From Oculina patagonica (Eukaryota), in the NCBI RefSeq assembly GCF_052425735.1, contig NC_135759.1, positions 2,046,495 through 2,110,000 of the forward strand: a stretch of DNA of 63,506 nucleotides, given 5' to 3'. The notes below the pieces were generated by a model that saw nothing but the letters and a program-made list of their open reading frames with translations, was not told the origin of the DNA and ran no database searches. Numbering within the stretch: position 1 is the stretch's first letter; each line of letters begins with the position of its first letter. The translations under genes and the position numbers were made by a program. This document shows positions 12,501 to 18,500 of this stretch, piece by piece.

Positions 12501-15500
12501 TGTAATGGGGACTCTCGCCTGTGGATAAGTTATAAAACACATTCTGTTTACTGCTATTCTATGTTGTGACAAGAAAGTAAGCTATTCAATGTTGTGACAA
12601 GAAAGTTAGCTATTCTATGTTGTGACAAGAAAGTAAATACCAGTAAGCTGCTAAGTGGCGAGAATATAATTCCCCGCGAGATTCTTGTCGGGATCCGTGG
12701 CAGGGAATTTTACAATGGCAGGATCCTGGCGGGAAGTCTGCCATTTTGGCGGGATCCCGCAATGGCAGGAATATTTTCCCAGTCAGGATCCCGACAGGAT
12801 ATCGCCATCTTGGCGGGATCTTGGCGGGATCCTGGCTGCTGTCGGGATTCACTTTTTTACATGGACAAGGGGATGCTCAGTGGATTAATAATTATGCACT
12901 CTGAGCTTTTACTGTTCAAAGTACTCAGTAAAAGAAGAATAGTTTTATTACAACCCTTACCTCGCCTGTTTCATAGGGTTTAGGTTTTAGAGCAGGCACA
13001 TGAACCTCTTCATAGCCTTTCCTTTGTTTTCTGAACGAACCATCAGGTAGCTGACATCTCTTGTTGGCCATAAGATGGCTGCCATCTTTGAAGGAAAGAT
13101 CTTCAAGATCCAATATTTTTCGACTACCTCGGGTCTACAAGAAAAATCAATTCGTCATATTTTGGTCTATGATTAGTTTTTGTGAAGAAATTCTGCATTT
13201 TGTTTGAAATTCCTTGGTGTTGCAGAATCTGTTGTTAGTTAGCTGTTGCGCTGTCAGGTTTGAGTATTGTTTATTATTGAATCCTTTGTTTTACATGTAC
13301 ATTATTAATTTTATTTTGGTACCGGTAATTGCACCATTTGCAACACCATCAAACTGTTATTTTGTTAGCACTATTTCATACTACCAGGATCCTATAAAAT
13401 GCACCTTATGTAATAACACTGTAATCAATAATATTGAAATTAAAGTACCTGATCAGACTCAATAGCATCCAAGTCTGCAGCAATCCTTGCTTTTCTATTG
13501 GCTGCCTTGCGAGCTCTTTCCTCCTATATGCATGAAAAAGAAATCATATAAGATCAGGCCAATTAAATTATTACCTAAACACTAATTCTTTCTGGAGGAC
13601 TTGTAGCAGGCCATAAGGCAATATTAAAAAGTGCGCACAAGTTGGACTTGACAATTACTTCATATGCATAAAAAAGCAGAACAAAATACTAACAGTGTAT
13701 TTGTTACAACCAGTGCAAGAAGGTATTAAAGAAAATTCTCTCAGCATATCACAGCCCACTGATCACGATCATAAACCATAATATCCACATGACTTCTTCA
13801 GAATCAGGTAAAGCATGGATTGATTTTAATCATTATGATCAGCAAAGTCTACATGGTTATGCTCATTGTTCTTGTGCGTTTTTCTTTGACAGGACTCTTT
13901 CTAACTTCCCTTCAGGGATGTAGCTAAGAAAACACTAAGCCAGCTCACTGACAACCCAACTGGCTTTTCTGGCCTTGGCAGCTCTAAAAGTTTAACCAAG
14001 TCTTTGTTTTCATGTGAAATTTTAGACGGGTTTCTCTTTCAGCCTGTGAAAATAGCCGGCAGCCGGCCCTTAACGATATCCTTGCTTCTTAGTTAATTAC
14101 ATGTACATATAGGTACATGTGTGTACATGTACATGTAGATTTAGCAAAGACAACATGGCTTATTGTAAGCACAACAGCAATCATTCTGAGATAAGTGCAC
14201 AGTCAAATTTTAATTTGTCTGACCTGAATTAAGTCTTCCTGTTCTGTCTCTGTCAATGCATGCAGGATAGAGGCTAAATCAGGATCAGAACTCATTTTCT
14301 CCTCAATTTCTTTCTTCTCCTTGGCACTCTGCGCCGTCGCAAGCAGTGTACAGTACAAGACCATACTCTTGTTTTTCCGCAACAATCTAATAAAGGAGAA
14401 TTTATCATGCCCCAGGAGTAGCATCATTTTATTCTCAAGTTCTCGATCATCCTTGGCACTCTTGAGGATCTCCAGTACTTCTTCTGCTTTTGATCGTGAA
14501 GCTTCAGCATCAGCATAATACTTGTTCAGCTCTCTTTGCAACCAGAAAGCATCAATGTCTCGAGGGTGGAGACCATCTCCTGATCTTTGTGACCTGTCCT
14601 CTTCTAGCTGTGCAACATAGAAAACAATAAATTATTGGAGCCATCACAATCAAGAACAAATAGAAGGCATATGACAGTATAAAGTACTTGCTAATAAAAG
14701 ATTTTATGAAAGGTATACATGTATATTTTAATTGGTAGAGCTGTAAAAATGTAAAGATAATAAGAATTACCTTATTGTTCCTTTTTTTCGCGGGACTTAT
14801 TTTTCGCGATTTTGCGGATGTATAAAAAATCGCGTAATTAAAAGACCTGCGAAAATTTATTTCAATGATTTTTATTGTATTTTTTATGTTTTAAATGTAT
14901 TTTTTGGCCAAATCGCGAAAATTAAGTCCTACGAAATAAGTAACATAAAGGTTACGTAAGTACAATGTAAGAAATGATGATCTTTGAATTTTCCAGATTT
15001 AGTGATCGGATCAGATTTAATCAGACTTTAAAAAGCAGAATGCCTCACCCCTCCCTGAAGAGTCATGGTAGTATCAGCTTCTACACCCTCCTCTTCATCA
15101 CTAGATTCTTCATCACGGACTTCGTCAAAGTCTTTATCTTCCTGCAAAATGAAAATGGAAGAGTCTGGCACATGTCTCACAAGTGATCAAGATCTTACTT
15201 TCTCCTAACAAAATCCATACATTGTAAACATACAGGTAATAAGAATATAACAAAACATCGGATGAATGATAATAATGCACATGATTCTAAATAGTGTAGA
15301 TCTTCAAGCATAGTGTTGTTCCTCAAGAACAAATCAAAATTCTGTAGTTTAATTTGTAAAATCAGTTTGCCACAATCAATTAACAAAATTGTAACCCTTT
15401 CAACGACCCAGCAATTTACTGATCTAATTTGCCAGGATAACCTCTAAGGGTGTGATTAGTTTTCCTCTCGACATTAAACAGGCACATGGTAACAGACACA

Positions 15501-18500
15501 TGACTGTGGTAAGCAAAGAGAGGAGCAAAAGAACAAAACAGTAATCAAGAGAATATATACCGGGTATATTATTTTCTTGGATAAAGGGGAAGGGAGAAGC
15601 CACGAGCCAAGTGGCTCATCAGGCCGGAGCTTATCCCGGTTTCCGTAGCATTAAGCTGCTAGGAATATTTCTACTCCTCCCTGAATGGGATGCTAGTCCA
15701 TTGCAGGGTTCCCCCCCAGCATTATGTCGCCGGTACCCATTTATACACCTGGGTGGAGAGAGGCACTATGAGAGTAAAGTGTCTTGCCCAAGAACACAAC
15801 ACAAGTGACCTCCGCCGGGGCTCGAACTCGGACCGCTCGATCCGGAGTCTGGCGCTCTAACCATTAGGCCACCGCGCCTCCCACAATTTTTTTTTCTTGG
15901 ATGATACATGTAATTTGATTTTCAAGATTTTCAAGAATTTTTGTACATCTAACTTCTCTCTGTAGAAACTTTTAATAAAGGAGACGGGGGCTTGAAACAT
16001 TGGAGTATTAGTAAAATCAACATTAAAATTAGGGACAATAAATGCGAGAATCCTACAGTTTTGTCCAAGATTGATCGATTGAAGTAGATTGAACTACTTG
16101 TACTCAATACACAACCCCAAGCTACCTAGCTTTAACCTGCATAGTGTTTTAACAAGAGTTTGGAGGTTTGGAGTAGGTGACAAAGCTGTGCTCTTAGAAT
16201 AATTACAGGGTGCCCAAAGGCTCTTATGTAAGAAATCTTGGGTGGCAACGCTCTTAAAAGCTTTCATGATAGCTAAGTTATACAAGTTGCTCAAAGACAA
16301 AACTAAGTCCCCTGTAGCTCTTCCTTTGAACAGTATAGTATCGATGGAAAATATTCATTATAGGGATTAATAATAATAATAATCAACTTTATTTAAAGAC
16401 GGTGAACATATAACAGGATGCTTAGGTATAAGAATTACTTTTTCATAACTTTTAATTGCTTACCGATGGCGCAGTGGTACAGCTCTGCGTTCTAAAGCGG
16501 GTGACGCGGGATCGACTCACGTACCCTGGCTAAAATTCTTTTTTCCTCCTTATTTTTTTTCCACGGATATTATATACATATCTGTCTTGTATAAAGTTTC
16601 GATACTCTTTTACTGATTATCCTTTAATAAATCGTGCCGTGCTCAAACCTTCCAGTCTTTTAATAACACATACATAAACTCACTGTCATCGTTTCCGAAT
16701 GTTCGCGATTATTATATGCGAAAAGGCAATATTTCATCGTTTGGGAAACGATTGTTTCTCATTTACAGGGGTGAAGTATTTTCTACACTTATTTCTTTGA
16801 AATTATACCTTTGCAAAGCTGTATTTTTATTCACAGCCGAGGGAAACAAAATTTAGAAAGCTAAGCGCCTGTGAGCATACCTAATTTGCATAATGTTAAC
16901 AACGATGGATGGAAGGATGGACGGATGGCTCAACTTCCCCCACTATACTCGTTCATTATGCATTCACGAGTAAAAACAGCCTTGCATAGTCCTCTTCAGA
17001 GCAGGACAATTTACCCGGTGCCTGGCCCTTGATGAAACACTGTAACACGATAATAAAAATTTATGTACTGTACAGTAGAGTACCTCTTCTTCCTCCTCGT
17101 CAAACTGCACGGCTACCCCATAAGTCTCATCAATCACTTCATCTGCATGAAAGAAGCAGAACAAATACCTGATGTTATGACCAGTGCAAGATTGCAGAAA
17201 ATATGCTCGGCATATCACAGCCCACTGATCACGATCATAAACCACATAATCAACATGACTTTTTTCAGAATCAGGTAAAGCATGGATTGATTTTAATCAT
17301 TATGATCAGCAAATTCTATCATAACGCTCATGTAGGTCAGTGCCTGGGTAATGCAACTGAAGGAATTTTACAGTATCAGTGCAAATAGATTAAATTAACA
17401 GAACAGAGATCAGTAATCATCACAAACAAAAAAAAATAATTTTTAGCTTGGAACAAAAAGTGGGCAACCAGTCAAAAGGAAAACATCAAAAGTTGTGTTT
17501 TGGCCTTTCTGAACATGCATCAAGTGCAAAATTATCTGCACAGGATACCAAGCGCATCATAAGAAAGGCCTACAGTACCTACTTAGCTTCCTTTGGAGCA
17601 GAAAACAAGAATGCATCATTGATGTTTGTTTGATGTGTTTGTTAATTGTCTCTGTATCTTTTGTTCATCATTGGTACAAAAAAGGTCATTGCAGCACCAA
17701 GAAACTTCATTATAATTGGATTCAAATTGCTACAGGAATTCGGTACAGGAATTTTCCAAAATCATTACTTGCATGTATTCTAAGGCCTCTATGGTAAGGC
17801 AGAGCAAAGTGCGATATTTCTAATGATACAATATACTCACACACACTCATGGTAGTCAAAGTACAGGGTTCTCAATAGAGATTTTGGCAGCCACTGCTGA
17901 AAGGTTTTCACCTGTAATGGGGAAAGGCTACATAACTCTAATCTATCTACTGCAGCAGTACTTTTGCAACTGTAACCCTTTCTAGTGACACTCGTAACAG
18001 GTACGGGTTACGGGTTCAACTGAGAACCCTGAGTAACACAACTTTTTTCCACTGAAGACTTACCGTCATTCAGCAAACTTCTGTCAACAGAGTAGTCCGT
18101 GATTTTCTTTCCCAAGTTCACCAACAATGCGTATCTTTCATCTGGCATTGCACCAAGTAGAGATAAAATCTCCTTCTGTCGTTCTTTATCCTAAGAGATG
18201 ATAGAAATTGAATCAATTGTACCTACATTGTATGGTAAAAGCACTATTCGGAAAAAGTTATATGTCAACAGAAATAATTAGAAAGTACCTTTAAGAAAGT
18301 GTGCAGTCAAAGCTGTTCTTCTATATAACTTGTTGAAAACATGGAACGAGTACAAGCTATTGTCGCAATGTTGGCGCAAGCAAAGAGAATTTACTTTTTG
18401 ATGAGCAAAATAAAAGAGCATTTTCTAAAAGAAATTGAAAGTATGTTTTCCGTGTTTCTATTGAGTTACAGAAACACTCGTGAAAGTTTGGGTGAATTTG

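Follow-up and report, generated by a model that had tools for sequence, protein, structure and literature searches.

A probable intronic box C/D snoRNA with variant boxes, present in two copies in the Brr2 gene of the coral Oculina patagonica

The question raised by this locus is what, if anything, is encoded by two related elements in the Brr2/SNRNP200 gene of the coral Oculina patagonica. Both elements lie in introns of that gene on the minus strand, which is the gene strand, within the window (the whole stretch of 63,506 nucleotides that was analysed). The host was identified from its exon open reading frames and from matches to the Pfam entries Helicase_PWI, BRR2_plug and WHD_SNRNP200, and its product is named 'pre-mRNA-splicing helicase BRR2' at JGI. 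The original prediction had claimed two same-strand copies, and blastn bore this out, aligning 13652-13851 with 17131-17318 at 82% identity over 202 nt. It had placed them at 13699-13866 and 17169-17332 around a core of about 105 nt; the copies are real, but the conserved unit is shorter, comprising 86 nt in what we call copy A (13758..13843, minus strand) and 87 nt in copy B (17224..17310, minus strand), with boundaries taken from cross-species conservation and 93% identity between these two inner units. A search of the 529-Mb assembly found the two copies, on the same strand, and none further; the element is not a transposon relic.

Copy B is the ancestral copy, and copy A is a recent duplicate that arose at the DNA level. 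The single copy in the related sequences L006, L007 and L054-L062 sits at the copy-B position, the copy-A intron carries an element only in the window genome of O. patagonica and in L005, and the sequence of L056 spans the copy-A intron without an element there. The homology between the two copies also takes in the polypyrimidine tract and the 3' splice site and runs 12 nt into the exon, and copy A is accompanied by a dead copy of the splice site, UUAUGCAU, with the 12 nt of exon, AUGAAGUAAUUG (together 13652..13671, minus strand), in which the splice site at 13664-13671 reads CAU, not CAG. The presence of this copied dead splice site and exon flank shows that copy A is a DNA-level duplicate of copy B together with its flank. 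Under the covariance model, copy B scores 119 bits and copy A 112.6 bits. The 3' end of copy B is located 81 nt upstream of a Brr2 3' splice site (AG at 17143-17144), which is followed by a 59-nt exon encoding 20 residues (17084..17144 including the AG, minus strand), and at the ancestral position the 3' end of the element falls 75-98 nt upstream of this same splice site, on the sense strand, in 10/10 lineages. From copy A to its real 3' splice site the distance is 234 nt. Metazoan C/D snoRNAs are typically intronic and in sense orientation, with about 60-90 nt between them and the downstream 3' splice site, a spacing that favours their processing.

Conservation was read from 12 distinct sequences representing about 10 related coral genomes or contigs. 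All 12 share a layout of 83-92 nt in the order terminal stem, C, antisense element, D', C', D and stem, so that cross-species conservation yields a box C/D anatomy where the element had earlier been said to fit neither snoRNA class. In the following, coordinates are those of copy B on the minus strand, with those of copy A in parentheses. The terminal stem is formed by a 5' strand, CUGAUCAU, at 17302..17309 (13835-13842) and a 3' strand, GUGAUCAG, at 17225..17232 (13759-13766). Its core of 8 bp, CUGAUCAU/RUGAUCAG, can be extended to 12 bp, and 94% of the cells of the extended stem are paired in the 12 sequences. The variable pairs toggle between wobble and Watson-Crick with pairing kept; the covariation signal is weak, with 36/500 shuffles reaching the observed score and most of the paired columns being invariable.

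The C box, AUGAUUA at 17294..17300 (13827-13833), begins at a distance of 10 nt from the 5' end of the stem and is the same in 12/12 sequences. It matches RUGAUGA at 6/7 positions, with the essential GA present and with U, not G, at position 6. The antisense (guide) element, CCAUGCUUUACCUGAUU at 17269..17285 (13802-13818), varies among the 12 at one U/C position, giving the consensus CCAUGCUUUACCYGAUU, and is 17-24 nt long, reaching farther 5', to AAUCAAUCC, in most species. It lies directly 5' of an invariant CUGA, the second of two in tandem, which is the D' box at 17265..17268 (13798-13801) and is embedded in UUCUGAA, invariant in 12/12; the first tandem CUGA (17271-17274) reads CCGA in L007. 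The C' box is UGAUUA at 17247..17252 (GGAUAU at 13781-13786), with an invariant GA between variable neighbours, and is the canonical UGAUGA in one species (L007). The D box is AUGA at 17235..17238 (13769-13772), within UUAUGA, which is again invariant in 12/12, and the A at its first position is complementary to the U at position 6 of the C box, replacing the usual G-C pair. AUGA is a documented variant of the D box (PMC8817022, PMC5389607) and is known from validated snoRNAs (PMC8817022). Between the D box and the terminal stem there are 1-3 variable, unpaired nucleotides, and the predicted kink-turn is not a textbook one. The second (D) spacer, of 8-10 nt, is probably without guide function.

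One of the checks put forward with the original prediction was whether the orthologous intron of other species has the element; about 10 lineages do, with 78-97% identity to copy B. The positions that are invariant in the 12 sequences are AUGAUUA, CCAUGCUUUACC-GAUU, CUGA, the GA of C', UUAUGA and both stem strands, and variation falls in the second spacer, in the D'-C' linker and at the positions beside the boxes. The flanks (150 nt upstream and about 80 nt of downstream intron) are at the level of shuffled sequence in L006 and L007. Judging from these alignments, selection acts on the unit only, the flanking intron having diverged to background. The structured hairpins that had been proposed were not borne out as meaningful: neither copy is predicted to fold more stably than its shuffles (z-scores of -1.05 and -1.36), in 5/11 orthologues the long hairpin stem is interrupted at the nucleotide that follows AUGA, without a compensating change, and helices that compete with the terminal stem are likewise broken in 5/11 sequences.

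The element is like intronic box C/D snoRNAs in its length of 83-92 nt, the order of its parts, an invariant GA in all four boxes, a guide beside D', a sense orientation within an intron, a distance of about 80 nt to the 3' splice site, and paralogues in neighbouring introns. It differs from the usual box C/D form in that C is AUGAUUA rather than RUGAUGA, D is AUGA rather than CUGA, and 1-3 spare nucleotides separate D from the stem. No Rfam family reaches its gathering score, and in a scan of the element only, box C/D families on the sense strand account for 8/8 matches of copy A and 10/12 matches of L007. The best match is snR57 (RF00474; 22.6 bits, E = 0.17, full model aligned), and membership in this family was rejected, since the score is below the gathering threshold of 50 bits. 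The consensus core of snR57 is built like the element, with a 5' stem, 2 nt (ac), AUGAUUA ... GUUUAUGAUC (UUUAUGAUc-U), 1 nt and a 3' stem. However, its guide is unrelated to that of the element, which cannot pair with the Gm1572 region, and yeast snR57 is a validated guide for 18S Gm1572 (PMC4344503). What the two have in common is the protein-binding core, and the likeness does not speak for common ancestry; it does show that a working snoRNA can use the AUGAUUA/AUGA pair. The matches to snR53/snoR53 (RF00338, 18.2 bits against a gathering score of 70) and to Drosophila Me18S-Gm1358 (RF00533, 17.4 bits against 50) involve guides, UCCAUGCUAAUC and UUCCAUGCACCAC, that share (U)CCAUGC with UCCAUGCUUUAC of the element. 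Coral 18S is without AGCAUGG at the snR53-type site, and pairing at the GGUGGUGCAUGG site needs two G-U pairs and places a U-U mismatch at the would-be methylated position.

Taken together, we consider it very probable, from comparative sequence evidence, that each copy encodes an intronic box C/D snoRNA of about 86 nt with variant boxes, carried within the Brr2 pre-mRNA. The analysis itself shows the anatomy of the element, its conservation, its position and its copy number; for RNP assembly, processing and methylation, we infer a conventional course from established snoRNA biology. The C box (AUGAUUA) and the D box (AUGA), joined by the CUGAUCAU/RUGAUCAG stem, would form a kink-turn platform for Snu13, Nop56, Nop58 and fibrillarin; the particle would assemble while the intron is being spliced, at about 50 nt on the 5' side of the branch point, and exonucleases would trim the debranched intron down to it. 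The antisense element of 17-24 nt upstream of D' would pair with a target of the form ..AAUCRGGUAAAGCAUGG.., and fibrillarin would thereby be placed on the target nucleotide opposite the fifth guide base.

A trace of sense reads is present in size-fractionated small-RNA libraries, which hold short inserts. In these, 37 reads fall on a 5.6-kb stretch, all of them of the gene strand; they are confined to the two H/ACA elements, to one repeat and to the bin of copy B. This bin (17227-17413) contains about 2 sense reads of 30-40 nt from one library, compared with about 30 for the neighbouring H/ACA element, and zero reads were assigned to copy A; a full-length RNA did not appear among the reads. 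The general claim of the original prediction, a selected, two-copy RNA element on the sense strand, is supported, and the three refuting conditions set with it (many dispersed copies, lack of conservation in orthologous introns, lack of a transcript) all came out in its favour, the last by this trace of reads. The Brr2 gene hosts a further snoRNA: in a neighbouring element, X, all H/ACA features are present. Coral Brr2 is a host of multiple snoRNAs, its C/D and H/ACA guides having gone through independent duplications.

The usual guide rules gave no target in the rDNA (15-kb unit) or in U1, U2, U4, U5 and U6. Across the rDNA and the snRNAs, the best guide duplex has -18.6 kcal/mol as against a shuffled mean of -18.5, with 26/60 shuffles equalling it, and there are 2 matches of at least 11 pairs where the null gives 1.84. 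A genome-wide search found no guide target either, and the 24-nt arm has no complementary genomic site at up to 3 mismatches. The guide is an orphan at present. The pairing with U6 that had been suggested through CCAUGCU amounts to just 7 nt (with AGCAUGG, A53-G59), which is at chance level against shuffled guides; next to it, the invariant guide bases UUAC find no partner in the GAUU of U6, and the second segment that had been invoked, GGGCUGUG, falls beyond the RNA and shows no conservation. The element may be compared with mgU6-53 and SNORD8/9, the vertebrate C/D guides for U6 Am53. Coral U6 carries the same GAUUAGCAUGG sequence, and CCAUGCU of the element, with CUGA four bases on, would put U6 A53 opposite the fifth guide base from the first CUGA. 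However, element positions 2-4 (UUA), invariant in the 12 sequences, mismatch U52, U51 and A50 of U6, the duplex comprises no more than 7 contiguous pairs and has the target nucleotide at its very end, and it is this first CUGA that is CCGA in L007. With positions 2-4 mismatched and only 7 pairs, identity as a U6 guide is not credible. The tests rule out canonical U6 duplexes; they would be compatible with pairing that is imperfect or assisted by proteins, and with an mRNA target dependent on G-U pairs. We see a slim chance that the antisense element acts not on rRNA but on spliceosomal or messenger RNA, for example through an imperfect contact with U6 A53-G59 or on pre-mRNA, with its level tied to transcription of the host, a U4/U6-unwinding helicase.

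As an alternative to a snoRNA, the element might yield no stable RNA and function in cis within the Brr2 pre-mRNA, where, as a structured or protein-binding segment, it would regulate use of the downstream 3' splice site, e.g., in autoregulation. The host is a splicing factor, the reads are very few, the search for trans targets came out empty, and the distance of 75-98 nt to one 3' splice site is fixed in all lineages. However, such fixed spacing is equally expected of an intronic C/D snoRNA, and conservation falls on the C, D', C' and D boxes together with a single-stranded antisense stretch, not on a co-varying helix. Further, copy A is 93% identical to copy B despite being 234 nt from a splice site, with its own copied site dead, and its retention away from the splice site argues for a position-independent, trans-acting product; we therefore regard a cis-acting element as unlikely. 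The flanks shared by the two copies, including the dead splice site, would also fit a functionless, neutral relic of a recent intragenic duplication or gene conversion. This reading, to which we give next to no probability, is already contradicted by the orthologue comparison, since the unit is 78-97% conserved in about 10 lineages in which the flanking intron has decayed to background, and substitutions avoid the boxes and the guide.

Two further readings concern the extent and fate of the RNA. A longer product of about 165 nt had been proposed, unclassified or H/ACA-like or a Cajal-body RNA, consisting of two hairpins of which the 3' one ends in ACA, with a CAB-like loop and pairing with U6. 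Its motifs are present as written (AUGAUUA, tandem CUGA, GAUCAUAA/UUAUGAUC, GUGAUCAGUG/CACUGGUYRU and ACA), in the window copies the stems occur together with ACA and UGAG/CGAG, wobble pairing survives the two substitutions of the 3' arm, and L005_up keeps that 3' stem. Nevertheless, we find this proposal hardly credible. There is no H box (ANANNA) between the hairpins; the 3' stem, the ACA and the ugAG/cgAG 'CAB box' are outside the conserved unit, and in L006, L007 and L060 the 3' half is either missing or cannot be aligned; the loop motif varies (GCUGACAC, GCCGAGGC, GAUAAAAA); the conserved terminal stem requires GUGAUCAG, which is the 5' arm of that hairpin; and the 7-nt U6 match leaves invariant neighbours unpaired. 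H/ACA or scaRNA identity was rejected for want of an H box and because the second hairpin, the ACA and UGAG/CGAG are not kept outside the closest species. What had been read as a 3' stem arm plus ACA, CACUGGUCAUAACA at 17173..17186 (minus strand), some 30-40 nt before the 3' splice site, is kept only in the closer species (the window genome, L005, L054, L055 and L062) and is lost in L006, L007 and L060. About 30 nt separate its ACA from the splice site, a distance at which one expects a branch site, and CACUGGUCAUAACA is probably the branch-site region of the host intron and not a part of the RNA. As for a hairpin precursor whose conserved 5' arm would be released as a small silencing RNA of miRNA- or siRNA-like type, RNAalifold gives one long imperfect hairpin over the whole element, the perfectly conserved 5' arm resembles a mature strand, and the reads come from small-RNA libraries. 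We nonetheless judge such a precursor highly improbable: the 3' arm is replaced outright in L007 with many predicted pairs broken, the stability is not above that of shuffles, the few reads compare poorly with those of the neighbouring H/ACA element, and the genome search with the 24-nt arm gave no complementary site at up to 3 mismatches. Cnidarian miRNAs usually need high complementarity to their targets.

The box C/D reading has several consequences. An apparent second hairpin plus ACA, which is probably the branch-site sequence of the intron, is the lesson of an otherwise ordinary finding. A 17-nt guide under strict selection, with no target found in rRNA or snRNA, makes this a clean case of an orphan snoRNA. 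The paired substitutions AUGAUUA/AUGA are held invariant in about 10 lineages, as in the core of yeast snR57, and thus provide natural evidence that this box pair is functional. For stony corals, whose non-coding RNA set is little studied, the element would add an unannotated, lineage-restricted snoRNA.

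The duplicated element that the original prediction had placed in two introns of Brr2/SNRNP200 (here called Y) is real. Its copies, copy A (13758..13843, minus strand) and copy B (17224..17310, minus strand), lie on the same strand, align over 13652-13851 versus 17131-17318 with 82% identity over 202 nt, and are 93% identical in their inner 86-87 nt (13843..13758 versus 17310..17224). The gene is on the minus strand, so that the RNA reads as the reverse complement of the window. The two copies can be told apart at positions in the C′ region. Exon ORFs in the window read as Brr2, their orthologous ORFs contain the Pfam domains Helicase_PWI, BRR2_plug, WHD_SNRNP200, DEAD, and Sec63, and one orthologous ORF is named "pre-mRNA-splicing helicase BRR2" by JGI. 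In the 529-Mb assembly, BLAST and a 24-mer search with up to 3 mismatches each returned these two copies of Y and no other, which rules out an origin as a transposon or another dispersed repeat, against which the original prediction had proposed to check.

Orthologous loci were sought with a protein query, the PWI-domain exon ORF, followed by examination of the contigs encoding it, and the Brr2 loci obtained from relatives span 96% down to 77% identity in this exon. Using BLAST and a covariance model, Y was detected in L005 (both copies) and in L006 and L007/L008 (one copy each), where it occupies the same intron as copy B. Scanning JGI/ENA metagenome contigs with a 21-nt core of Y added seven genomic orthologues, again in the same intron (L054-L057 and L060-L062), so that the conservation in orthologous introns that had been suggested as a check is borne out in about 10 lineages. 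Identity to copy B is 78-97% across orthologues, whereas in L006 and L007 the flanks (150 nt on the upstream side and roughly 80 nt on the downstream side) are no more similar than shuffled sequence, so that the 83-92-nt unit itself is under selection. Five Brr2 loci at a greater distance (L009-L013), in which the PWI-domain exon, the one that copy A follows, is 77-88% identical, have no Y upstream of the orthologous exon, and the covariance model detected none within 10 kb on either side; the orthologous intron is short in these loci. Two other contigs from the metagenome scan, L058 and L059, were rejected as orthologues, having only a 23-mer in common with Y in a coding-like context. This exact 23-mer of the guide region, GCCATGCTTTACCCGATTCTGAA, is located at L058:1227-1247 and L059:839-859 in apparent coding sequence (..AMLYPIL..); the match is probably a coincidence and, being same-sense, is not a target.

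While the element itself stands, its boundaries and fold were misread in the original prediction. The conserved unit is 83-92 nt long with a box C/D layout. The 12 distinct Y sequences were combined in one alignment (A6). The invariant segments are, in order, the stem strand CUGAUCA(U), AUGAUUA, CCAUGCUUUACC-GAUU, and CUGA in the 5′ part, and the GA inside nGAnnn (the canonical UGAUGA in L007), UUAUGA, and the stem strand UGAUCAG in the 3′ part. Sequence varies at the start of the antisense stretch (its 5′ end), in the D′-C′ linker (9-16 nt), in the 8-10 nt preceding AUGA, and in the few nucleotides that separate the boxes from the stem. Judged from the sequences, this layout is that of a box C/D snoRNA, i.e., stem, C, guide, D′, C′, D, stem. 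The C box has U at position 6, where G is usual, and the D box has A at position 1, where C is usual. These two deviations are mutually complementary, and a U-A pair would substitute for the usual G-C pair in the second stem of the kink-turn. AUGA D boxes have been reported in Dictyostelium snoRNAs (PMC8817022), and AUGA has been reported as the D′ box of yeast U18 (PMC5389607).

Over the 12 sequences, 94% of the terminal stem is paired, with variable pairs alternating between wobble and Watson-Crick, but these statistics are weak, as most columns never vary and 36 of 500 shuffles reach the observed value. Alternative to this layout, the long hairpin of the original prediction, with the stem GAUCAUAA/UUAUGAUC, needs the nucleotide after AUGA for pairing, as does a Watson-Crick alternative from RNAalifold (GAUUA/UGAUC). 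Six sequences have U at this position and five have A, opposite a constant partner, and the position is better read as a spacer than as a base pair. Further, the folds of the two copies are no more stable than those of shuffled controls (z = −1.05 and −1.36).

The box C/D assignment was also compared with known families. The Rfam search proposed earlier gave no match at gathering thresholds anywhere in the window, and we therefore claim membership of the class rather than of an Rfam family. In permissive scans of the element alone, all eight matches on copy A, and 10 of the 12 on the L007 orthologue, were box C/D families on the sense strand, all of them scoring below gathering. The best match was yeast snR57 (22.6 bits, E = 0.17, full model; below the gathering score), the consensus of which has a core in common with Y (stem-ac-AUGAUUA ... 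GUUUAUGAUc-U-stem). snR57 is a validated guide for 18S Gm1572 (PMC4344503), and reading its D box as AUGA would put Gm1572 opposite the fifth guide base.

The position of Y within its intron is conserved as well. Copy B has its 3′ end 81 nt before the 3′ splice site (AG, 17143-17144) of a 59-nt exon, and the distance from the 3′ end of the ancestral Y to the 3′ splice site is 75-98 nt in 10 of 10 lineages. CACUGGUCAUAACA is conserved some 30-40 nt before the 3′ splice site and would most simply be the branch-site region of the intron, which would separate Y from the branch point downstream of it by about 45-50 nt, an arrangement known to favor splicing-coupled C/D snoRNP assembly. A branch-site region here would also account for the 3′ stem ending at ACA in the original prediction, which is kept in closer species only and is absent in L006, L007, and L060. 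The CAB-like loop noted with it is not conserved across species.

Homology of copy A runs on through a polypyrimidine tract, a dead 3′ splice site (CAG to CAU), and 12 nt of the exon downstream of copy B (splice-site copy and exon flank at window 13652-13671, minus strand), which indicates that copy A arose from copy B by duplication at the DNA level; the real 3′ splice site of copy A is 234 nt away. The dead splice site is a small example of a snoRNA copied along with splice signals. Copy A was found in the window genome and L005 only. The same stretch contains a second duplicated element, X (window 15387-15523 and 18621-18755, minus strand), whose copies X1 and X2 are 95% identical and the only two in the genome. 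X follows the canonical H/ACA plan, with one hairpin on either side of an AAACUA hinge and then an ACA before the final 3 nt; it has a weak match to SNORA51 (26 and 23 bits, under the gathering score of 50), and orthologues of X are present in L005, L006, L054-L057, L060, and L061. The single-copy order in L006 (X, exon, Y, exon) is the arrangement of X2 and copy B, which are therefore considered ancestral. A single segmental duplication giving rise to both pairs was considered and rejected, since there are only two short HSPs in common, since the copies occupy non-equivalent introns, and since L054 and L056 have two X copies and one Y. From these copy numbers, and from each pair having only its own short HSPs, X and Y were duplicated separately.

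Reads from three ncRNA-seq runs with size fractionation and from one poly(A) run, all labeled as the same species, were mapped to 13300-18900. The small-RNA inserts are 30-40 nt (75-nt reads running into adapter), and thus full-length snoRNAs are not visible. All small-RNA reads are on the gene strand. Judged by the bin depths of run X20 (37 reads), X2 accounts for about 27 reads, X1 for about 3, a repeat at 15731-15917 for about 4, and the bin that includes copy B (17227-17413) for about 2; exons and other intron sequence of 13300-18900 have no small-RNA reads, and copy A was assigned none. X gives the strongest small-RNA signal of the stretch (depth 4.9 on X2), and the expression evidence for Y, about 2 reads in the bin of copy B, is a weak positive. 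The poly(A) run (X23) has no depth over Brr2 exons and is therefore uninformative on host expression. The repeat at 15731-15917 has poly(A) RNA reads on both strands that continue into unrelated sequence, with a weak tRNA-like Rfam match (15814-15872, 19.4 bits), and is probably a tRNA-derived SINE expressed elsewhere in the genome.

Targets of the guide, the conserved stretch just 5′ of the D′ box CUGA, were sought in a 15-kb rDNA unit found through an 18S 5′-end pattern (18S, 5.8S, 28S, ETS, ITS, and IGS) and in U1, U2, U4, U5, and U6, and nothing beyond chance was found, including for the target proposed originally. Over rDNA and snRNAs, the best guide duplex is −18.6 kcal/mol versus a shuffled-guide mean of −18.5, with 26 of 60 shuffles as good, and matches with at least 11 pairs number 2 versus 1.84 in the null. 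Genome-wide, exact 12-mer guide complements occur at chance frequency (33 vs. 28 for a control); among the 28 sites fetched of the 31 outside Y, none was in an Rfam family when scanned and none had a meaningful pairing extension. The 24-mer guide complement with up to 3 mismatches recovered only the antisense strand of Y itself. The word CCAUGC is common to the guides of Y, snR53/snoR53, and Me18S-Gm1358. The snR53-type 18S site was rejected as a target, the coral sequence there being AUAAGAUGG, in which AGCAUGG is absent, as was the Gm1358/Gm1328-type 18S site, where a U-U mismatch falls on the nucleotide that would be methylated. A 28S 5′-end site, GAUCAGGCAAGGC, offers 12 pairs and was likewise discarded, with a mismatch at position 5 of the L007 guide and a null-level score. 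The guide is an orphan by these tests, which covered the rDNA unit, the five major snRNAs, and genome-wide 12-mer and 24-mer complements. Its predicted target would contain AAUCRGGUAAAGCAUGG, in which methylation would fall on the R with the invariant CUGA as D′, or on the third A of GUAAAG with the first CUGA as D′.

In the original prediction, two conserved segments could pair with U6, in a part of the U4/U6 duplex that Brr2 unwinds. Coral U6 is canonical (...GAUUAGCAUGGCCCC...), and pairing of the guide with it is limited to 7 nt (CCAUGCU with A53-G59). The adjacent guide bases UUAC are invariant in the 12 sequences yet mismatch U52, U51, and A50 of U6, which means that the real target has GUAA there. 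The second segment, GGGCUGUG, is outside the RNA and not conserved. The functional link between U6 and Brr2 is unsupported, a low-probability speculation. In this genome, genes for U1 and U2 snRNA follow each other by turns, forming a tandem array of at least 15 units of about 2.0 kb each (G000:C1:45938094-45948280 and C1187:615687-636291), and U5 and U4 are also in multi-copy clusters.

Other elements were observed in and around Brr2. A C/D-like element is located in another Brr2 intron of a more distant relative (L010:12478-12561, plus strand; 88% PWI-domain exon identity), with the same box pair as Y (AAUGAUUA ... UUAUGA), although the model that found it favors such boxes. Its boxes are directly flanked by a perfect 9-11-bp stem (GCCUGCAGCC/GGCUGCAGGC), it contains internal CUGA motifs, and its guides are unrelated to that of Y; searches gave neither an rRNA or snRNA target for it nor a homologue in the other loci. 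The intron between two DEAD-domain exons (window 11446-12203) is full of 10-nt TGCGATCGTC-type tandem repeats forming nested inverted repeats, with arms of up to 90 nt that are 84-97% complementary, and looks like a foldback or MITE-type insertion. An inverted repeat at 18796-18954 (both strands), with 66-nt arms, 86% complementarity, and a 21-nt loop, has sub-threshold Rfam matches to plant miRNA families (MIR2670, 42 bits versus a gathering score of 117); no small-RNA reads were found on it, and it is probably a MITE-like hairpin.

Taken together, a known class, the box C/D snoRNAs, gives the best account of Y, and we consider it likely that Y is a clade-restricted, duplicated, orphan member of this class with a variant, internally consistent C/D core, for which RNP assembly, processing, and methylation activity are predicted.
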